From Calcarisporiella thermophila CBS 279.70 (taxonomy: Eukaryota; Fungi; Calcarisporiellomycota): a stretch of DNA of 64,000 nucleotides. How positions within the stretch are numbered: position 1 is the stretch's first letter; every line of letters starts with the position of its first letter. Positions 1,339-45,116 of this stretch are shown piece by piece. Made by a program: the position numbers and the translations under genes. The notes beneath the pieces are model-generated. The model ran no database searches. It was not told the origin of the DNA and saw only the letters and a list, made by a program, of their open reading frames with translations. The DNA lies in contig NW_027192197.1 of assembly GCF_041956535.1 (NCBI RefSeq), forward strand, positions 631,829 to 695,828. Direction: 5' to 3'.

Positions 1339-2408
1339 GGCTAGTGAAGGTGAGCAAAAGAGTCTGGCTTGGGAACAGCTCGATATCTCGTCTTTTAAAG
1401 AAGATATGACGGCCTGAGCTATTTATTTGGGTGGGTGATGAGCTATTTATGCTGTAGTTGGTATTTGCGTGAATTAATAGAGGTTCTCCCTGGCTGAACT
1501 TGTGGTATTACCAAACAAAGTGGAATCGCCCCGCTTAAAGTCAGTTTCGACTGATATTATCCACTCAATTGAAAACTTCTGTCTTAAAGGATTTAGACCG
1601 ATGTGTGGATCAGTACACAGGATAGGAAAACGCAGAGAGCTAAATTTTGAGGGATTTATCTAAAACCGAAAAGGCTAAGTTTACAACGTCATACTCCGAA
1701 GTCTGCGAAGCCCACAATTGGTCATGAAGAAGTAAAAAATAGGCCAACTACGTTAATAAAGGTAGAGATAACGCTCATCTCAGGTAAAAATTTAACTAAA
1801 TCTGTTATTACGCGACACAGGTATGGAAATGCTATCATTTTTAAGGTGCCAAGCCTCGATGGAGCATAACTTTCTCATTGGGAGGCAGAATAATCTACGA
1901 CTAATTATCTATTATTTAAGAAAGTTAGCCTCTTCGTCATGATCGTTCAGGCACTTCTCCTGGTCTCCCATATAAATATTGGATCGCATCCTAAGGGTGT
2001 TAATTTTCTTTTTCAACCTATTTTTTTTTGCCCTCTTTGATATTCAATCTTATTTGCTATACCATGAATAGTATTGAAGACCAGAGAAAATCACTGGCAA
2101 ACTCACTGCCTTAAAATTGTCTTTTTGCTTACGTGGTTTTAATCTCGAATTCTCACACAGCCAGGCTCGATGAAAAAAAAATATATCATTGGGCCAGCTC
2201 AGTATTCGAGGGAGAGCAATCGGCATCGAAATCTTATAAAAAATAGAGCTTCGATGCTCTAATACATTTTCCGTCAACTTCAGTTTGATACGCCACCTCT
2301 GAAATTGAAGAGGCTTCAACCATTACCAAATTGGGGTTTTGTAAGCCATGTGTTTTGTACGGGTTTTCTGTCCGTTCTACCGCTCTACTTTTCAAAATTC
2401 ATTGAAAA

Positions 2409-4376
2409 ATGAATGATTCGCATGATTCTAATAGATCTGCATTTAAGCCCTCATGGTTCGACACTAACTTAGATGTAATAGAACATATTATCGAGTATCT
2501 TGACACCCAGAGTGTCGTCAACCTGTCGCAAACCAATTCCACACTTCGAAGCATCTGTCTTGCCACTATTGCCTGCCGGAAAGCAAAATGGAAATTGTTT
2601 TCCCCTAACGAGACGTCAGCACCCCCTGTATTTACAACACGATGTGGCGTAATGGTGGGAGAACACGAGTTCGTTGTGCCTTTTATGACCTCAAATCCTT
2701 GTTGTTACATTTTGAATCTGGACACTTTCCAGTGGAGCCGCAAGCTAGTGGAAGTCGATGATCCTAATTTTCAGCCGTTCATTGCTCCATGTGTGTCGCT
2801 ACACCACAAAATATACATGTTTGGTGGGCGTAAAGTCCGGCCGTACCGACTATCAAATGATTTATATGAACTCGATATGAAAACAATGAAGCTTTCCAAA
2901 AAAAATCCAGTTGAGGGAACGCCTCCGGATCCTAGGCATGAACACTCGGTCGATATAGTTACGAACAGATACATTGTAGTCTTTGGTGGGCTAATCGAAA
3001 ACTCAGCTGGTAGGTTTGGATATAATGGATGTAGCATGTGTAGTCGACGGCGCTAAATCTGATTTCACTTTTGTGATTCTGCCCTAATAGGCGAAAGTGA
3101 TGTCTACCTATACGACCTAACTACAGACACCTGGATTGAGCCTATTGTTCGGGGTCAAAGCCCATGGGGGCGATTCGCGCATTCTACAGCCGTCATGAAT
3201 AGTCACGATTTATTCGTATTTGGCGGCACGCAGGTTCTCGAGAGTGACGATTCCAACCGAGTATTTGATGATTTGTACCGACTTGATTGCCGCACTTTCA
3301 CATGGTACAAATACGATTGGTACCGCTCTCCTAAGCAACAATGCGTCTCCATCTCTCACGATAACACAATGCCAACTTCAGACGAATGCCTTGTGCCCAC
3401 AACAGGTCCTCGTCCGCGCGATCGCCTTGAGTGTGGTATGATTGCTTGGGGCCACAAATTGCTTATTTTCAATGGACACACATTTGGCAACGACCTCGAT
3501 GACCACCTAATCACCTATGACTATCCGCTGCACGCAATAGATGTTTTTAATACTCGGCTCTTAAGATGGACCCGCCTGGACTCACAAATTCACGTAGAGG
3601 ATGCCTCAATCCGTGCCCAAAACATTAGCTATGCTTTCCTTCCTGGTGAGCGTGGCCCTTCAGTGCTAATGATAGGGCAGCAAATTTTGGATAAAGGAGG
3701 GTCGTCAGTGGAAAGCATCCATACGAAGTCGGATTCGTCGTTTGAGGCTCATACCAACGAGATGTCGGGCGAGAGCTATAATTCTGGGAATGAATTGCCG
3801 TCAGAATTCCTTCATCCGATAACCGTGAAAACATGTTCCCGCGACTCTTTTCTAATCACCCTGAAATCCAAAAATTTGGCCAAGGCTGCAGCCATCAGTT
3901 CAGATCAGTCCGAAGAGAGAGTGGAATCCCCACCCAGAAAAAAAAGAGAGCCTGAGAATGGCATCATACCGAACGATAGTATTAGTATATCATTAGCGTC
4001 GCGCTCCAAAGAACAATTAGAGCAAAGTGATTCGGAAATGCATTGTTCAGGGACAGTTGAATCTCAAATCGGCTCGCTCCAGAAGCAATATGCTCGGAAC
4101 TTAATCCTGCAACAGCATGAACAGATGCAAGAAGTAATCAATGAAGACAATCCACACACTCCAGACGGTAGACCACAACCAACCTCTCCCTCATTCTATC
4201 AGAAATCCCAACCGCATTCAAAATCTGTGTCATCGACAACCTCGTCCCCGCTCTCTAATGATACTCATCCCTACGGCGCTGATACGAGTCCCAGCAGATC
4301 GGAATATTTTTGGCAATTCAAACTACGCCAGAACTACATGCTTGCACCATTATACGGGTTGTTATTAATGTCATGA
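2409..4376 (+). CDS. F-box/kelch-repeat protein
   Basis: Exons 2409-3009 and 3091-4376 (in-frame GT-AG intron). N-terminal F-box-like 'LDVIEHIIEYLDTQSVVNLSQTNSTLR'; kelch repeats (IYMFGG, IVVFGG, LFVFGG). Confidence 0.8.
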
Positions 4377-4632
4377 GTTCTTTAGATGTAGGTTATCTAG
4401 ATTGTTTTTATTTTTGCTTTTTTTTTTTCATATACTCATTATTATTTATATTGCATTGTATTATAATCACTGCGAATATTTCTGTTTTTCATATTAGCTA
4501 TATGTGGAGATAGCTATTAAACATTCCTGGTTATATTGGTGTGATAATTTTGCGATATTATTAAAAGCAGAGAGAAAGGAAAAAAAAAATGCATGGCCAT
4601 GAAAAAGATATAGCTTTCTGCAGTGACCCACT

Positions 4633-7600
4633 CTATAGATGTAACACCTCCACGCCATATTCGGGCACCCCTTGGCCTGCTTCCAAAAATCCTCTCCGTG
4701 TAGACTTGCGGCCACTCGTCGAGGATGCTTTTCCTCTTCCTCCAGAAGAGGCTGCAGAGGTAGCTTTTCGCGCATCCTTACCACTGCCTGATTTTCGCTC
4801 AAACAATGCCAGTGGTCCTTGCAATAATTGCAGCTGGTTGCACGTTTCGACTTCTTTCTGCACTAGAGAGACTGCATAATTTAACGAAGGATGAAGGGAA
4901 GGTGTCAGGATAAGGGTTGGGAAATGTGTGTCGAGCAAAAGTGCAAGGAAATCGAGTAACTAGAACAGAAACAGGGTTAGTTGTATTCGCGTAGGAGGTT
5001 TTCAATGTTTAGCGTAAAGGTGAGCAAATGCTTAGGTAGAAATCAGGTTCCATTGATACATACATCATTAATGACTGGGAACTCCTTATTTGTTCGCACT
5101 TCGTAAAGACCATTGAGCAGTGTACGGGTTTCTAGCCACCTAATCAACATACTGAGCACCACCCCAAGCTCTTCTACTGTTAGTTGGTGTAATGCCTGCT
5201 GCATGAAGTAGTCGTTGCGTGGAGCGGCAATGATGAGCGAGAGGAAGTCCTTTACATCGACGTGGCTCTTACTTTGGTGCAGTGCGATAACGCGCTGCAG
5301 AAGCATGATCATATCGGCCTCAGGGATGTCGTGAAGCCTTGTTAGTGCAAGCTTAATGAGACCCCAATCTCTTCGTTCAAGGAGAGCCGGTATTATGCCA
5401 CCATCCACTAGGCTGCTCGATATTAACTGACGATGGATAAGGAATTTGACAACTTTGCTGGGCCAGAAGCTGGAGTCAAATTGGCCATCTGCATTCTTAG
5501 CGAAACATCTTTCTGCAACTCTGCGCACAAAATATTGCGAGAGCACGAGTGGCTCCTAAAAAAAGGAGGAGTGATGTAAATATCAACTTTCTGTAAAGGC
5601 CAAGTTTCTCCGCGCACTAGATAAGTTACCTTTTTCTTTTTGTCTATATCTATTTCCTTTATACCGTTGACTTTGGATTCACCTTCTATTTTGGATTCCC
5701 CATCCACTTCCATAGAACTGGCGTGCTCTATCTCCTCTGTCTCCTCTGTCTCCTCTTTCTCATCTTTTTCGTCTTTCTCCACTTCCTCCTCTTGCTCTTT
5801 TCCGATCCTTTCTTCGACATATTCCATGAACACACTAGCAAACTCTTTTACTGTCGGCGTGTCGTCCTTATTCATCAGCTTTGTCAACACTGCCTCTTCT
5901 CTCTGCTGAACTTGCTCTATTTTGGATTTCCACATTGTCATTAACTTGTCCGGGTCAGCATCTGTAAAAAGTTCTTCTCCAGCCATAGCCTCCATTCCAC
6001 TTCGAACAAGCCCTGCAGGTTTAATTGCAATATAATCAGCCGTGGCACGCATCCGGTTCATTGCACCAAGAAGTGTGAGAGGAGCACAGAAATATGGACA
6101 TAAGAAGACGGATGTTTTTGAAACAGTAATTTTGGATGCAGAAGGAGGGCTTGTGGTGATGGCAAGGACGAGGTGGGAGTTTGGAAGCACAGTCAGCTAT
6201 TAAAACAATATTTAATAATTGCTTTGTAACTTGAAATTGGATTATCCTCTCGTTTACCTGATAGGAAGTTTGCGAGTGCGTTGTGTATTCGTGGGATGGA
6301 GATGGAATCACGGCTTCAGCTTGTAAAGTTCCATACCGTACGTCCCAAATAGTTAGGGTATGCTCGTATTTATCTGTCAGAGTGGAAGCAATGAGCCCTC
6401 AATTCCGAAAAAAAGCTATAAACATGAGTGTGATAACTTACCTGACCCCTCCTGTTTTCGAGCGCCGGAAAGTGCTAGATAATTCCCCTTCAATGGAGCT
6501 ACCGAAACACTCCCAGAAGAAACGAGTGAAAATCCACGTAGAGGAATAGATAGTATTTCGGTCAATGAAATTTGGCCAGATTTTAGAAACTGGATTTGGT
6601 AAATCTTCCAAGAGCCATCTGAGCCTGCAAAGAAAAAATAGTGAAAATAGACGAAATGAGCTATATATCCAAAAAATACACCTTCATGTAAAAAGCAACT
6701 TACAAAGCACAGAGAACTGCCCGGAGGTTGGATCCAAATTAAACGCTAACGGCTTATTCTCCTCCTCAATCCGCACCGTCGCCAAATTATTAACTTTGTT
6801 TCTATCTGAATCAATCCCGAAGAAGTGCACCCTAAACTCTTCTCCTTCTGTGGCCGTCACGGTTAAAATCATTGTGCTTCCTTGAGGAAGTATTGAGGGA
6901 GGAACGCAGGAGGAGGTTGTAGAGAAGATATAGGACCACTTAAGTTGAGCCCCAGGAGCAGTTGGGGCACGCTCGCAAGTGTGTACAACACGTTTGAGAT
7001 CGTCAGAAACCAGCGAGATAGAGCCGTCTTGATTAATGAGGATAATGTGTGAAGGTAGACAAGGAGAAATCTCAAGGGAATATATTCTTTTTCCAAACTG
7101 AATTACGATACTTTAGAGGAAAATTCTCCAACGAAAGTGAAGGGTTCAAAGTTACCTTTTTGGTTGTCTTTCTGGCGAAATTTCTCTCGCTACGCCCGTC
7201 TAGAAGCGCTTTCTCTTCCTCATCATGCCAGCACCAAACTAACCTATGCTCCTCACTTGAAGAAACATCGGATCCACCAGCAACAACAGCATAAACATGA
7301 CGCATAGTTGGTGTTTTAGTGTGGTATTTTGCTGGAGAAGAAAGAATTAATCCAGGAGGCGTTGACCAAGAACGAATGCATTTTTGATCATTTGTCTAGG
7401 GAAGGGAGAAAATTAATTGGATTTAAGGAAAGCAGCAAAATAGATTAATTCAAGCAACCAACATTATAAAGATGCACTCCTTCGCCCTGTACGGTAATAA
7501 CCACAGCATCGATATCAGTTGCACTCTCAATGTCACTGGCAGCCGATCCAGGTGGTGACGAATCAGCTGGACAGCAGGCAACCGAAAACGAGCCCTTGCC

Positions 7601-7654: not shown

Positions 7655-8694
7655 TGTACAATAGTCGATTAACCTTTTTCCACCGTTTCAAACTTCTTAC
7701 ATCTATATGGAACGAATTCAAATAGAAATAAAAAGTCACTCAGTAAACATGTGGCTTATAATGTTAATTAGCAGTCATTTTCTTTTGTAGCTATTTTAGA
7801 TAGATTGTAAATACAGAATATCACTTCAGTAAAACCACTACGATAACTAGAATCTTAAAAACACTATTTATCTTCCAATAGCTACAAAATTAATATATAG
7901 CGATAATCTAATATTTAATTGTATTTTCACTTTTTAACCTGAGAACTTCAGTTGCGGTAACTAGAAGTCTACGTAGTATAGAAAAAATGATTGGAAGATA
8001 TCGTTAAAATGCCTAGAATACATTTAGTAAAATGAGGTTTCTACCTCATCATGAATGATTCTAGTTTTATTCTAAAATAATGATTTGACGAATACTTTAT
8101 TCCACTGCGTTACAATGCAAGCCTAGGAAAAATCGATCTCTGTTATGGATACCATGTTTCATTACTAAAATGTTTAACTCGAGCGTAAAGTACCGAGATT
8201 GCTAATAGTAATAATAATTTATGGAAATCCTCTTAATTATGACATCAGTAAAAACATATAATGTTTATTCATACAATTCCAATATTCAATAACGTACTTG
8301 TGAAAGAATAACTGTCCTTATATTTTTGCAATTGTAGGCAATTAGATTGTTTGGAATGCAAAGATTATGGAGACTACGTTTATTGAAAAAAAAAGACATA
8401 GTATGTCATATTAGTTCAAAATTAAAAGATATTAACCCTACACGCCTCAATATACTAGTTCGAAGCTCCAAATTAACAAAAAAAACTATAGGGTGTACCT
8501 CAGTTTATAGGAAAAACCGTATTATACTCGAGAGAACAAGTGTGCTTGATAAGTCTGAGTTTCAAATACTTTCAAAAAATTATATAATAATATTGATTTA
8601 CTTTGGAAAATACATCACTAGAAATTCCTCCTATCCGATATATTTAACGATTATGAAAATCAAGTGCCTGTTTCAAAGGAGATTTACAGTTTTC

Positions 8695-37092: not shown

Positions 37093-39161
37093 TTAGTTCT
37101 TGTTACTAGCGGAGGATTTATCATCGTCTACAACGGTATCATTTGAAGAGCTGGACTGTTGCTGGGAATTCTTGTACACCATCTCGAACAATTTAAGGGA
37201 GCCTTGCTGGAGATTAGCTGTCTCTGTCTTGATCAGCTCGGGGTCAGCATTTTCAGAATCCGCGTTCTGAGCAAGAGTCTCACGCAGCTTCTTAATTTGC
37301 TCACGGATCTTCTCTGACTCGGCAGCATCAAGACGATCCTTGAATTCATTCATGTGCTTCTCGGTCTCGCTAATAACGCTCTCAGCAGAGTTGGTAGCTT
37401 CAATTGAAGCCTTGCGCTTGGCATCAGACTCAGCAAATTTCTCAGCATCCTTGATCATGTTTTCGATTTCCGAGGAGGATAAACCGGATGAGGCCACGAT
37501 TGACATACTCTGGTCGCGACCAGTAGCCTTATCTCTGGCGCTAACATTCACGATACCATCGGCATCAATATCGAAGCTGACCTCAATTTGAGGAACTCCC
37601 TTGGGTGCGGGGGGAATACCGGTCAGCTGGAAGTTGCCGAGAAGCTTGTTATCACGGCACAATTCACGCTCGCCTTGGAACACCTTAACGTCAACGGCAG
37701 TCTGACCATCAGCAGCGGTGGAGAAAACTTGGGATTTCTTGGTGGGGATAGTCGTATTGCGAGGAATCAAGCGGGTGAACACACCACCGAGAGTCTCGAT
37801 ACCCAAAGAGAGAGGAGTGACATCAAGCAGCAAGATATCAGTTACGGAACCAGCCAATACACCACCTTGAATGGCAGCACCAACGGCAACAGCTTCATCA
37901 GGGTTCACAGACTTGCTTGCTTCACGGCCAAACACGTTTTTCACAATCTCCACAACCTTGGGCATGCGAGTCATACCACCAACAAGAAGGACCTCATTGA
38001 TGTTGGACGTACTAATGCCAGCATCCTTAATTGCCTTCTGGCAGGGATCAATAGTGCGATCAAGCAAATCTTTTACGATGGTCTCAAACTTGGCACGGGT
38101 GAGACGTGTGTTAATGTGCTTGGGGCCGGAGGCATCCGCAGTAATATACGGTAGATTGATATCGGTTTGCACGGTAGAGGACAATTCAATTTTAGCCTTT
38201 TCAGCTGCCTCACGAATACGCTGGATGGCCATGCGGTCTTTTGAGAGGTCAATGCCCGATTCGGCCTTGAATTCCTTCAAAAGGTGCTGAACGAGACGGG
38301 CATCGAAATCTTCACCACCAAGTGCAGTATCACCATTCGTGGACTTCACCTCAAATACACCATTTTGGATTTCAAGGATCGAAATATCAAAAGTGCCACC
38401 TCCCAAATCGTATACAGCGACTGTCTTGTCACCGGACTTATCCAGGCCATAGGCAAGTGCAGCAGCAGTGGGCTCGTTAATCACACGGAGTACTTCCAGA
38501 CCAGCAATTTTGCCAGCATCTTTCGTGGCTTGGCGTTGAGCATCATTGAAGTAGGCGGGGACAGTGACAACTGCGTGTTGGACCTTACGGCCGAAAAAGC
38601 CTTCTGCAGTCTCCTTCATTTTACCAAGAACAAAGGCACCAATCTGCGATGGGGAATACTTCTCATTGCGTGCTTCTACCCATGCGTCTCCGTTGGAGTG
38701 CTTCACGATTTTATAAGAAACCGACTTAATATCTTCCTGCACAGCTTTATCATCATACCGACGGCCAATGAGACGTTTAACAGCATACAGAGTGTTTTCA
38801 GGGTTGACTACGGCTTGGCGCTTAGCGGCTTGACCAACAAGGAGCTCACCATCCTTGGTGAAGGCAACAACTGACGGAGTGGTGCGTGCACCCTCAGCAT
38901 TTTCAATCACTCTTGGATTTTTACCTTCGAGTACAGCAACACAAGAATTGGTTGTTCCCAAGTCAATACCGATCACTGGACCATTTACCGGTGAGCTATA
39001 ATTGCGGGCAAGGACACCCAAGGCAGACCGCTATATAAAATAAATTAAAGAATTTTAACATTATGTATGGTAAAAGATAAAATGATCTAGTAAGCCCTTA
39101 CACTTCTCAAGTAAGCAGAGGTATTGACAAGAGGGAGAGGATTTCGTGCTAGGCGGTACAT
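37093..39161 (-). CDS. SSC1: Mitochondrial Hsp70
   Basis: Presequence exon '[11 protein letters not shown]...', '[10 protein letters not shown]', 'GDAWV', '[11 protein letters not shown]'; no EEVD. Confidence 0.97.
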
Positions 39162-41783: not shown

Positions 41784-41857
41784 TGTTTTCGTCCGGGTTC
41801 GAACCGGAGACCTTACGCGTGTGAGGCGTACGTGATAACCAACTACACCACGAAAAC
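41784..41857 (-). tRNA. tRNA-Val(CAC): tRNA-Val (anticodon CAC)
   Basis: GTTTTCG/CGAAAAC acceptor stem, A box TGGTGTAGTTGG, anticodon arm TACGC-CTCACAC-GCGTA, B box GGTTCGAACCC, downstream oligo-T terminator. Confidence 0.97.
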
Positions 41858-41944
41858 TGCTGCTATCTCTTATAGAGACCATCGTTGAAAAATTTTTCAC
41901 TTAGAGAATATTATAACGACTTTTACAGCGTCCAATTTTTCCAC

Positions 41945-42696
41945 GGGGGAGGGTTAGTTNNNNNNNNNNNNNNNNNNNNNNNNNNNNNNNNNNNNNNNNN
42001 NNNNNNNNNNNNNNNNNNNNNNNNNNNNNNNNNNNNNNNNNNNNNNNNNNNNNNNNNNNNNNNNNNNNNNNNNNNNNNNNNNNNNNNNNNNNNNNNNNNN
42101 NNNNNNNNNNNNNNNNNNNNNNNNNNNNNNNNNNNNNNNNNNNNNNNNNNNNNNNNNNNNNNNNNNNNNNNNNNNNNNNNNNNNNNNNNNNNNNNNNNNN
42201 NNNNNNNNNNNNNNNNNNNNNNNNNNNNNNNNNNNNNNNNNNNNNNNNNNNNNNNNNNNNNNNNNNNNNNNNNNNNNNNNNNNNNNNNNNNNNNNNNNNN
42301 NNNNNNNNNNNNNNNNNNNNNNNNNNNNNNNNNNNNNNNNNNNNNNNNNNNNNNNNNNNNNNNNNNNNNNNNNNNNNNNNNNNNNNNNNNNNNNNNNNNN
42401 NNNNNNNNNNNNNNNNNNNNNNNNNNNNNNNNNNNNNNNNNNNNNNNCTTAGTTTGTGACTGCTATCCACTTGATCAGAAGCTGAGTCTTGATTATTGAA
42501 AAGATCGCCCTTACGATAAGTACAAAAGATTACATCGGTTCCACGTACATGCTATTCACGACAACTACGATACACGCATATCGATTGAAAGTCTATCGAT
42601 CAAGGGCCTATATCTCGTTATGTTAAGTCCATTGACATTAACTTCATGTAATATATGGAAATTAAATAAAAGTTTCCATTGATTGATCAAAAAAAA
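41945..42696 (+). mobile_element. Poly(A)-tailed retroelement insertion 1 (spans assembly gap)
   Basis: Flanked by the 15-bp duplication gtccaatttttccac (41930-41944 and 42697-42711); ends with AATAAA...TTGATTGATC-A8. Confidence 0.7.
41960..42447. other. Assembly gap (488 N)
   Basis: Run of N. Confidence 1.
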
Positions 42697-42729
42697 GTCC
42701 AATTTTTCCACCCTTGGACGGAAAGGTGT

Positions 42730-42914
42730 TCCATATTCTTTTCCTCTCTTGTATAATACCGTCCTTGAAAAATAGGATGGTATTCATACGATCAACCACT
42801 ACTTACATGTATTTCTCCTGACAATTTTTTTTTGAGAGTATTTCTCCTGACAAGGCACTATACTAACTTAAAAAGATACTTTTCAATAAAGATCCATAAA
42901 TCTCAAAAAAAAAA
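42730..42914 (+). mobile_element. 185-bp poly(A)-tailed insertion (5'-truncated LINE 3' UTR or SINE-like)
   Basis: AATAAA plus A10 tail; perfect 15-bp TSD tggacggaaaggtgt at 42715-42729 and 42915-42929. Confidence 0.8.
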
Positions 42915-43616
42915 ATGGACGGAAAGGTGTATCAACACCATATCAGGCCCCCTAAACACTCAGGTGCTGAGCCCCAGGAACCTCGTACTTGGCGACCTAC
43001 CAGAAGCCCCAAGGACAGTAAGACACGCGGCTCAAATCATCTTCGATTCGATGTTATGGCAAATCCATCGGGACCGAATCGCCTACCATTTCGAATGCAC
43101 TCGAGCATCACCCGAGACAATCATCCTCCGTGCCAAAATGGACATCGAGGAGGCTATCGGAGGTGAACTGATAAAGGCACGAAAAAGACGAGAGGTAGAG
43201 TTATTCCGAAGAAGGTGGTGCAGTCAGGGAGCGGTAATAGAAAGTTCGGATAGAGCAAGACTAAAACAGGAGTGACGAAGCAACCCTTCCTCTCCCCCTA
43301 TCCGCTCTTTACCTTCTCTCCTCCTCTTTACTTCATATCTCTCACCAAATACCCGTTCACTATATACAACTATTCTACCCTTTATTCCCTTGCTCCACGT
43401 TTATCACCTTCTCTATGTTCTTACCCCCTTGCGTTTCTTTGCTTTCTTCTCTTCCCTCCTTTTTGGGCTAACATAAATTGTCAAAATCCAAGTTCCACCT
43501 TGCCACCTAACTATATCCCCACCCCTTTATTCCCCCCTTTCATCTTTTATTGTAATCATTAAACTCTTATAAGCTACGGAAACTAATAAAAGTCTCCGTT
43601 GATTGATCAAAAAAAA
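42915..43616 (+). mobile_element. 5'-truncated L1-clade LINE: ORF2 C-terminus, pyrimidine-rich 3' UTR, poly(A)
   Basis: 'MLWQIHRDRIAYHFE' matches the W.IW..RN...F motif of L1/Tx1 ORF2 C-termini; stop at 43275; A8 at 43609-43616 followed by gtccaatttttccgccctt. Confidence 0.75.
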
Positions 43617-43635
43617 GTCCAATTTTTCCGCCCTT

Positions 43636-45116
43636 TATTCACTTACTCCGTCCTCTTGGACAACGAAAAAGCATATGATCCCATAGATCGAGAATGGCTA
43701 ATCCACTGCCTACAAGCGTTCGGTTTTGGTGAGAAATTCACCAGATTGATAAAGTCTATCTACACGAATAACCAAGCATCGCTCATCCTCAACAATCACT
43801 TAACAACTCCATTCCCAGTTAATCAAGGGGTAAGACAAGGGGATCCTCTTTCTCCACTTCTATACAATATAGTCATAGAGCCACTCCTAATCAAACTAAG
43901 GAGCGTGATCAGCGGAATAAAGATACCCAACATTCCGAGTATTGTAACAACTGCCTTTGCGAATGATATCACGGTGGCAGTAGCTGATCAACGAGACGCC
44001 GACACACTGTTCGAGGTAATAGACAGATTTCAGCGAGCTTTCAACTCCAAGGTCAATCGCCAGAAATCGGAAGCAGTCCCCTTAAGCCAACACACAAGAC
44101 TGCACTTACAACTACCATGCCGTTATATACAGGAAGAGGGATCCTTCACTCTGCTGGGAATGCCCTTTAACACAAAGGTCATCTTCCCGAGGGAAAGCTA
44201 CTTCGAAGAATTGAGAGCCAAGTTACAAAAGACCGTCGAATCATGGAAAACGAAATCACTATCACTGATAAGAAAAGTCCATCTTGTAAACTCCCGCCTG
44301 CTCTCTAAACTATGGTACATATCTCAACTTATACCTCCTCCACCAAAATTCCTAAAGTGCGTGAACAATATCATAAGGAGCTTTATCTGGGGAGGAAGGC
44401 GCCCACAGATATCTATGGAAATCCTCTAACAACCATCAGGACAAGCCCTGGGGCTCATTAACCCGAAGTATCAAACCGACGCGATACTGGCCACGTGGTT
44501 TCAAAGAATGGCTACAGCAATGTCTACGGGAATCCGCCCAATTTAGGTGCAACTCACCATACACATATTCGAAAAGTTCTACGCTCCAGCTGGAATGAGA
44601 GTGGGTATCCTGGCAACGCAGTACACACAACGCAAGCTCATCCGAACAGATGGTATATGGCCTCACCTACTGAGAGTATGGAGAAGTTTGGACGGCATAT
44701 TAGATCTCACCCAGAAATTCAACATCGAAGAAACGCTCTCTCTTCCCATAAACAACAACTCTTACTTCACAATGGGCGGATGTCCATTAAAATCGAAAGG
44801 CGAAAGTGTAGGACTGGTCAAACTAGGTGACTTCTTTAAACTCAACCGAAGGACTAATACATACAAACCGATGGTAGAACCATAAGTCCATGAATACGTG
44901 GCGAGAAATTCCGATCAATATTCCAGCCGATTTAGAGACAGCTACATAGTTCTTCAGTGGCACTGGAGGAAACGAGAGATCCAATTGACCCCACAACTGG
45001 CTGATGCCCTGCTACAAGGTATACCACAGATTGAAGGACCACGCACGTTCCCGCTGGGTAAATGTGTGCTAGCTGGCACAAAGATCAAAAACTTCCGTAC
45101 AAAAATCGAAAAATAA
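43636..45116 (+). mobile_element. Degenerate L1/Tx1-clade LINE reverse transcriptase fragment
   Basis: 'LLDNEKAYD', 'GVRQGDPLSPLLYNIVIEPL', 'AFANDIT' (YADD position), 'KVNRQKS', 'LVNSRLLSKLWY', 'FIWGG'; stops and frameshifts after 44429. Confidence 0.93.

Follow-up and report, generated by a model that had tools for sequence, protein, structure and literature searches.

Why do three copies of one 15-mer, GTCCAATTTTTCCRC, lie in series beside a transfer RNA (tRNA) gene, with retroelement DNA between one copy and the next? The question is raised by a 64-kb stretch of the genome of Calcarisporiella thermophila, a fungus that is thermophilic and early-diverging and belongs to the Mucoromycota sensu lato; this stretch (contig C7:631829-695828, from an assembly that totals 28.16 Mb and 116 contigs) is called the window throughout. 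ARAGORN finds a single tRNA gene in the whole of it, tRNA-Val(CAC), and upstream of that gene stand four poly(A) retroelements (A, D, B, and C), all with their 5' ends toward it. The answer that we consider very probable is that L1-like long interspersed nuclear elements (LINEs), together with a tRNA-derived short interspersed nuclear element (SINE) that borrows the 3' tail of one of them, integrate by target-primed reverse transcription (TPRT) at a position measured from tRNA genes and not given by sequence. The insertions keep one position and one orientation relative to tRNA genes, their target sequences are unrelated, stacks of them recur, and LINE and SINE have a 3' tail in common. All of the data concern fixed copies in one assembly, and the later genome-wide tests consist of coordinates and pattern counts.

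The tRNA-Val(CAC) locus

The locus is made up of the following features, given in window coordinates; TSD denotes a target-site duplication, RT reverse transcriptase, ORF an open reading frame, and UTR an untranslated region.

41784-41857, minus strand: tRNA-Val(CAC) gene (ARAGORN), 5' end (41857) toward the stack
41858-41929, no strand assigned: 72-bp spacer from the tRNA 5' end to the putative first nick site, holding an A/T palindrome
41930-41944, plus strand: TSD copy 1, the left TSD of SINE A (15-mer count and TSD scan)
41945-42696, plus strand: element A, tRNA-derived SINE with head (A and B boxes), body, LINE-type 3' tail, and A8, collinear with SINE copies
41960-42447: assembly gap inside element A, length estimated at 488
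42697-42715, plus strand: TSD copy 2, its first 15 bp the right TSD of SINE A and all 19 bp the left TSD of LINE fragment B
42716-43616, plus strand: element B, 5'-truncated, L1-like LINE with the ORF2 C-terminus, a stop codon at 43273-43275, 3' UTR, and A8
42730-42915, plus strand: element D, 186 bp long and ending in A11, a poly(A) element that belongs to another family and differs in its 3' end
43617-43635, plus strand: TSD copy 3, which is B's right TSD and carries a single A/G mismatch; a short run of old target DNA comes after it
~43640-45108, plus strand: element C, RT fragment of a second, older, L1-like LINE family, 5'-truncated, frameshifted, and with its 3' end cut off

In the window, the 15-mer is confined to three positions, 41930, 42697, and 43617, against 0.06 copies expected from shuffling; three or more copies arose in 0 of 100 shuffles. 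Counting upstream from the mature 5' end of tRNA-Val, near-identical copies of which are also present in locus L032, copy 1 begins at base 73. Copies 2 and 3 each directly follow an A8 tail and continue with CCTT, and the 3' motif AATAAAAGTYTCCRTTGATTGATC(A)n is found twice in the window, ending at 42696 and 43616. SINE A is flanked by a perfect 15-bp TSD, and B by one of ~19 bp with a single mismatch.

Much of this had been claimed in an earlier reading of the same DNA (the original prediction). The three 15-mers lie at exactly the positions it gave, its 73-bp offset agrees with the ARAGORN coordinates, and the A8-to-CCTT junctions, TSDs of 15 and about 19 bp, and the single orientation of all stack members were found as described. 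So was an L1 ORF2 C-terminus with 3' UTR, namely element B with its stop at 43273-43275, longer copies of which carry the zf-RVT domain. The three-element stack that it proposed must be amended: the LINE 3' part and the RT fragment stand, a fourth element, D, has been added, and the gap-holding element nearest the tRNA, which had been taken for a LINE, is a tRNA-derived SINE. Finally, the palindrome that had been linked to the TFIIIB region, tgaaaaatttttca, is indeed present at 41886-41899, but it is not a general feature, being absent from the other 32 tRNA upstream regions examined; these are A/T-rich or derived from long terminal repeats (LTRs).

Element A and the SINE family

Element A begins with GGGGGAGGGTTAGTT and then enters a block of N. 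The left flank of the gap (41945-41959) corresponds to positions 1-15 of a SINE family ~339 bp long (reference copy L033:7413-7751), and the right flank (42448-42696) corresponds to positions 87-335 on the same strand at 95-97% identity. Since a single SINE accounts for both flanks in collinear order, the expected content of the gap is ~71 bp rather than 488, unless it conceals a further insert; the gap-containing element is a tRNA-derived SINE. The SINE head carries an A-box-like TAGTGTAGTGG, a B box GGTTCGAATCC, an acceptor-like stem, and an encoded CCA; its predicted fold is cloverleaf-like with a canonical T loop (energy z-score -1.2, not significant). Against Rfam the head gives a weak tRNA-clan match of 21.9 bits, below the gathering score, and ARAGORN makes no tRNA call on it. 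At the other end, the last ~94-114 bp match the LINE 3' end. The genome holds at least 92 SINE heads (by an exact 19-mer) and 139 candidate copies, with TSDs of 14-19 bp. SINE-type and LINE-type 3' termini (in the window, 42665-42692 and 43585-43612) are told apart by two diagnostic differences, GTTTCCATT versus GTCTCCGTT.

A gap of this kind raises the question of whether repeated insertion is the right reading: the triple 15-mer might come from misassembly across the N block, or the stacks and tRNA-SINE units from segmental duplication or unequal crossing-over. Copy 1 lies only 15 bp from a gap whose length is an estimate, and the sequence is known at the level of the assembly only. Copies 2 and 3, however, lie in uninterrupted sequence, and the gap flanks fit one SINE. 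Taken with the other stacks and the genome-wide pairs described below, we judge an artifact or rearrangement to be extremely improbable.

Position and orientation at tRNA genes across the genome

The arrangement was sought genome-wide by counting a pattern made of the reverse-complement B box of a tRNA gene (GRNTYGAAC), a gap, and the SINE head GGGAGGGTTAGT, with the reversed pattern as control.

Gap of 94-124 nt: 0 matches; reversed control 0
Gap of 125-155 nt: 60 matches; reversed control 0
Gap of 156-186 nt: 4 matches; reversed control 0

The four matches at the widest spacing are visibly tRNAs with introns or long arms. In total, 64 SINE-tRNA head-to-head pairs were found, all in one orientation, and a hand count of the partner tRNA genes gives at least 35 distinct sequences. 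If 52 nt are taken to separate the B box from tRNA position 1, the distance between the SINE head and the tRNA 5' end is 79-103 bp (mode 86-88), and the nearer 30-bp window, equivalent to a SINE-head spacing of ~48-78 bp, holds no match anywhere in the genome. As a check, the original prediction had called for a sharp peak in one orientation, about 70-95 bp in front of many tRNA genes. Such a peak exists for the SINE with the LINE-type tail (60 matches versus 0 in the adjacent interval, control 0). Of the 92 exact SINE heads, 52 fit the tRNA geometry.

At least 42 sites in the genome match the 117-bp LINE 3' end. Thirty stretches of 3 kb around LINE 3' ends were examined, and 20 of the sites were extended toward 10 kb (16 reached the full length; four are shorter, on short contigs or at contig ends). 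A tRNA gene is present in 13 of the 30 short stretches, compared with one in the 64-kb window. A head-to-head (opposite-strand) tRNA sits at the inner edge of the repeat stack in 14-15 of the 20 extended loci, and three of the remaining five are contig ends or contigs of 2-3 kb. Copies that bear RT sequence were also compared with known tRNA genes: 9 of 45 have a head-to-head tRNA within 8 kb upstream, where 0.7 would be expected by chance and the mirror geometry gives 3. These counts are a lower bound, as the tRNA list used was 63 scored out of ~1459 RF00005 candidates.

Could such an association build up passively, through near-random insertion followed by survival in harmless, gene-poor tRNA neighborhoods, or because tRNA genes and repeats cluster together? 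The tRNA genes of this genome are clustered, and repeats and tRNAs would then share neighborhoods; the mirror-geometry control for RT copies is not zero (3/45); and some clean insertions, at L034 and L043, are far from any tRNA. Selection, on the other hand, cannot give a first nick that is sharp to within 10 bp (66-73 bp) or a single orientation, nor can it give an empty adjacent 30-bp window (0 versus 60) or the re-use of an exact nick three to four times. Passive accumulation is therefore very unlikely to be the explanation.

Further genes that RNA polymerase III (Pol III) transcribes were considered as alternative targets, and no SINE head was found near the main copies of 5S ribosomal RNA (contigs C31 and C53) or near U6 (C30). 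The exception is a SINE head at G000:C5:1186705-1186723(-), which lies ~10 bp, head to head, from a weak 5S match (1186735-1186848(+), 47.8 bits). At contig C38, two SINE heads stand face to face 56 bp apart (G000:C38:117559-117577(-) and 117634-117652(+)), with no space for a tRNA gene between them; there, a SINE head may itself have been the integration target, with another spacing. Strong clusters of tRNA genes are found at C10:204-215 kb, C8:936-942 kb, C24:86-89 kb, C25:432-438 kb, and on C29, and the clustered genes are often close divergent pairs of one isoacceptor with retroelements between them.

Nick geometry and independence of sequence

The close-up set consists of 33 tRNA genes with flanks in hand. 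Offsets of 1-399 bp upstream of each were scanned for a word of at least 11 bases that recurs downstream directly after an A-run. Nine of the 33 genes gave a left TSD start near the gene, at 66, 67, 67, 67, 68, 70, 73, and 73 bp, plus a T-rich, doubtful one at 60 bp; the only other matches, at 245 and 395 bp, are both inside stacks. The TSDs are 11-19 bp long and mutually unrelated. Within a locus, the left boundary of the TSD is constant and the right one varies (15 versus 19 bp in the window, 19 versus 14 bp at L023), which fits a precise first nick and a looser second nick. Under the standard TPRT model, the first nick would fall on the tRNA-sense strand at the tRNA-proximal TSD boundary.

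Some LINEs of the Tx1-clade and R-type carry an endonuclease that reads a motif, and a motif upstream of tRNA genes might be read here in the same way. Several tRNA genes do share LTR-derived upstream blocks, and some of the sites are identical (L038 and L047). At seven kinds of tRNA gene (Val, Ile, Pro, Ala, Thr, Lys, and Gln), however, neither the TSDs nor the sequences flanking them are related, and the base that precedes the nick is not constant. In the window, moreover, successive insertions entered target DNA and then LINE-derived DNA, the TSD of D lying inside B. We regard sequence-specific targeting as having a minute chance of being correct. Integration is position-specific, orientation-specific, and sequence-independent, upstream of tRNA genes.

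Insertions at this one site come from no fewer than two 3'-tail families (D is one, the B-type LINE and its SINE the other), and probably from the older C family as well. At L023, a 614-bp LINE fragment with no tRNA-like head occupies the same site as SINEs. As headless LINE fragments use the SINE site, the SINE head is not what finds the tRNA gene.

Recurrent stacks

The window is not the only place where a TSD is repeated. Locus L023, which contains no N, reads outward as tRNA-Ile, a 66-bp spacer, TSD, the 614-bp LINE fragment, TSD, a 5'-truncated SINE, and TSD. Four copies of one 16-mer surround three inserts at L024, and L048 has three copies of one TSD. The window's triple repeat thus belongs to a pattern that holds more generally, and this speaks against a local misassembly. 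In favor of rearrangement, two stacked inserts at L024 have identical first 30 bases and are accompanied by a 20-N gap, so unequal exchange could account for them. The triple-TSD stack at L023 is free of N, however, and the 64 head-to-head pairs span at least 35 tRNA sequences and different spacers, so that they are not copies of one segment.

In the window and at L043, L039, and L038, C-type sequences are found on the distal side of B-type tails, which fits older families having been pushed outward. One alternative for the junction, that B and C were copied to L043 as a unit by duplication or read-through, was rejected: the junction letters differ, and the L043 copy of C is longer at both ends. 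Given C-type fragments downstream of B-type tails at four loci, stacking fits better than a copied junction. A second candidate, that 15-mer copy 3 belongs to the RT reading frame of C, with which it is in frame, was also discarded, as other C-type copies differ upstream of ~43640. Between 43617 and 43639 the copies in L043 and L039 are wholly different, and the alignment of human L1 ORF2p to C begins at residue 12, from which it follows that this segment is old target DNA and that the third 15-mer is a true TSD copy.

The LINE families and element D

Elements B and C are L1-like non-LTR elements, an assignment made at the level of the L1 superfamily and not between the L1 and Tx1 clades. Their hallmarks are tails of A6-A13, copy lengths that range from 145 bp to over 1.4 kb, and TSDs of 11-19 bp. 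Element B is 92-95% identical to more than 20 other copies and is interrupted after its first 14 bp by element D. Longer B-type copies carry a CCHC zf-RVT domain (PF13966; borderline in the L038 copy at 27.7 bits against a cut-off of 27.5), and a C-x2-C-x8-H-x4-C motif is visible in the B-type translation. An exhaustive protein search with the B-type ORF2 C-terminus returned fragments of at most 334 amino acids in C. thermophila, plus distant relatives at ~25% identity; two of the distant full-length relatives, P0154 and P0161, combine Exo_endo_phos, RVT_1, and zf-RVT domains. The LINE copies in hand end short of the N-terminus, their bodies being N gaps, and the LINE is known here from its RT and ORF2 C-terminal parts.

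The RT of element C matches RVT_1 at 1e-21 (region 43617-44429), and its closest solved relatives are human LINE-1 ORF2p (2e-25, versus 2e-16 for R2). A Protein Atlas look-up gave generic RT clusters only. C-type copies in L038, L043, and L046 extend beyond the equivalent of 45108. Element D has its own 15-bp TSD, TGGACGGAAAGGTGT, at 42715-42729 and 42916-42930, and further copies in L025 (95%), L041, L033, L035, L024, and L044.

Some 5' ends recur. The C-type sequences of the window (43640) and L039 (9190) start within a few bases of each other, and the C-type sequence of L043 (1444-1500) starts 54 nt further upstream; the B-type 5' ends in L038 and L041 are 12 nt apart. These could mark a hot spot of 5'-truncation or defined shorter subfamilies. 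The B-type 3' UTR exists in a long form and in a form without the equivalent of window positions 43390-43522. At L038 (C12:195123-205122, reverse complement 1585-6769), a 5185-bp poly(A) element with an 18-bp TSD lies 67 bp upstream of tRNA-Gln; 5014 of its bases are N, and its 3' end, ...AATAAAGACTCGGCATTGATC(A)12, is unlike the B-type tail. LINE bodies are generally assembly gaps (L038, and also L041 and L046).

LTR-like repeats at a second register

Blocks of upstream sequence that different tRNA genes have in common end 10-15 bp before the gene. One of them is a 245-bp repeat with TG...CA ends, the same end of which faces the tRNA at Gly, Gln, Cys, and Asn genes.

L040:3010-3254: intact 245-bp repeat, tRNA-Gly
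L038:3034-3232 and 8418-8486: 245-bp repeat in two parts, tRNA-Gln
L047:7027-7095: part of the 245-bp repeat, tRNA-Cys
L039:5315-5380: part of the 245-bp repeat, tRNA-Asn

The repeat looks like a Ty3-like solo LTR, which suggests that Ty3-like LTR elements have a fixed register of their own on the same tRNA genes; an association of Ty3/gypsy elements with tRNA genes is known in Rhizopus (PMC2699053). The L038 copy is 99.5% identical and is split by a 5.2-kb, mostly-N element; if the later solo LTR is subtracted, the 5' end of an older B-type LINE lies ~85 bp from tRNA-Gln. At least three further common blocks, ending in ...aaca, lie ~10-12 bp before other tRNAs. At L043 (C44:42024-52023, raw 1994-2398), the 5' end of a B-type LINE fragment is occupied by a SINE whose 19-bp TSD is clean; the LINE fragment abuts the first ~70 bp of the 245-bp repeat, with no tRNA within 6.8 kb on the expected side. 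This SINE is either an off-target insertion or the remnant of a rearranged former tRNA locus.

Elsewhere in the window, a mitochondrial Hsp70 gene occupies 37093-39021 on the minus strand, and its product is 100% identical to a C. thermophila protein.

Proposed mechanism

In the mechanism that we propose, the tRNA-sense strand would be nicked first, ~66-73 bp upstream of where the mature tRNA begins, and a second nick would follow 11-19 bp further out. The element would be laid down with its 5' end toward the 5' end of the tRNA, which would put the 5' junction ~80-92 bp upstream. With the tRNA gene as the ruler, each new insertion would re-use the TSD copy nearest to it and push older elements outward, which would give the order SINE A, D, LINE B, and old RT fragment C in the window; the element nearest the tRNA would then be the newest. 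By analogy with TRE5-A of Dictyostelium discoideum, the positional cue is most likely the Pol III initiation complex (TFIIIB/TFIIIC or Pol III itself), as read by a LINE protein, and the cue would act in trans on the SINE RNA.

Several points weigh against this account. The tether to Pol III is argued from analogy rather than from protein-level data, and the ORF1 region of the LINE lies in N gaps. The site is ~35-40 bp further from the tRNA than that of TRE5-A and lies beyond the classical TFIIIB footprint, so the cue may differ; the larger distance implies that the adaptor or the factor contacted (TFIIIC, Pol III, or the first upstream nucleosome) may not be the same. As only fixed copies of one assembly were available, selection after insertion is not fully separable from targeting, and the junction to the left of the gap is known from the assembly alone. 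The strict tRNA pattern is missing at 40 of the 92 SINE heads, although several of these are at contig ends or a few kilobases from an occupied tRNA, as is expected of displaced stack members. At least two clean, TSD-flanked copies (L034 and L043) have no detectable tRNA, 5S, or U6 nearby, and the targeting is accordingly strong but not absolute.

If the account is true, a "safe-haven" strategy has evolved convergently in a compact (28 Mb) genome, and the positional cue can be transferred in trans to a SINE RNA that shares only a ~100-nt 3' tail; a cue passed on through so short a tail would narrow the source of specificity to proteins rather than to the RNA body. It would also provide a second system, with another spacing (~70 versus ~35-47 bp), in which the Pol III machinery positions a TPRT endonuclease. 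Proteins of C. thermophila are already favored for structural work, as in the Hsp104 papers based on cryo-electron microscopy, and the element proteins of a thermophile could lend themselves to structural studies of a site-directed LINE integration complex. A predicted divergent SINE promoter is present at 64 or more tRNA genes and may affect the chromatin of the Pol III neighborhood, and SINE-bearing tRNA loci are hard to assemble.

Comparison with known systems

Stringent LINE-SINE pairs with a common 3' tail exist, for example UnaL2/UnaSINE1 of the eel. The present pair resembles them in its tRNA-derived head with A and B boxes and in a last ~94-114 bp that equal the LINE 3' end, and the common tail implies trans-mobilization by tail recognition. 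To our knowledge, however, the known pairs are dispersed and not aimed at Pol III genes, and we know of no report of tRNA-gene targeting for any SINE yet described from a fungus, MgSINE and Foxy among them.

The closest likeness in integration behavior is to TRE5-A/B/C of D. discoideum, which are also non-LTR elements with poly(A) and TSDs at many kinds of tRNA gene, inserted with the 5' end toward the tRNA 5' end at a narrow, sequence-independent position; repeated re-use of the site and an LTR element closer to the tRNA are likewise common to both (PMC5391098, PMC5911963, PMC5006619). TRE5-A keeps a strict 5'-to-5' orientation within a window of 47+/-3 bp, and its ORF1p contacts TBP, Brf1, and Bdp1 of TFIIIB (PMC5391098, PMC5911963). 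The C. thermophila elements share with the TRE5-type class the many tRNA kinds and the strict orientation but not the distance, as their 5' junction lies at 79-103 bp (mode 86-88) and their first nick at ~66-73 bp, versus 47+/-3 bp; the comparison is one of integration behavior only, and membership of the TRE clade is no part of it. They also differ in having a fungal rather than an amoebozoan host and in their non-autonomous partner, a tRNA-derived SINE instead of the ORF1-containing TRE5-A.2-like derivative.

NLTR-B of Polysphondylium pallidum is a non-LTR element that is unrelated to the TREs and yet inserts ~50 bp upstream of tRNA genes, so the tRNA-targeting habit evolves convergently (PMC5006619). 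It differs from the present elements in belonging to an RNase H-bearing group, in its dictyostelid host, in having no reported SINE partner, and in its distance. Among fungal elements, Ty3 and Ty1 of Saccharomyces and the Ty3/gypsy elements of Rhizopus insert upstream of Pol III genes by way of the transcription machinery (PMC5911963, PMC2699053), but they are LTR elements that use integrase and not TPRT, Ty3 inserting at the Pol III start site and Ty1 in a window of up to 1 kb. Zorro3 of Candida albicans is, like B, a fungal L1-like LINE with a target preference, but it is aimed by sequence at poly(A) tracts and has no link to tRNA genes (PMC7175516).

The tRNA-targeting non-LTR elements on record, TRE5, TRE3, NLTR-A, and NLTR-B, are listed for dictyostelids only (PMC5006619, PMC5911963), and the fungal tRNA-targeting elements described in the literature that we searched are all LTR elements that use integrase. 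No link between a LINE or SINE and tRNA genes in Calcarisporiella, Mucoromycota, or zygomycetes was found in the literature outside subscription journals. We put at about even the chances that the system is an independently evolved fungal form of Pol III-guided TPRT with a ruler of its own (~70 bp), in which the guide acts in trans on a SINE, the SINE plants a divergent Pol III promoter, and the whole is layered over a Ty3-like LTR ~14 bp upstream. In the literature searched, the previously known non-LTR cases are dictyostelid, and the C. thermophila elements set beside them TRE5-like behavior in a fungus, with another register and a SINE partner.

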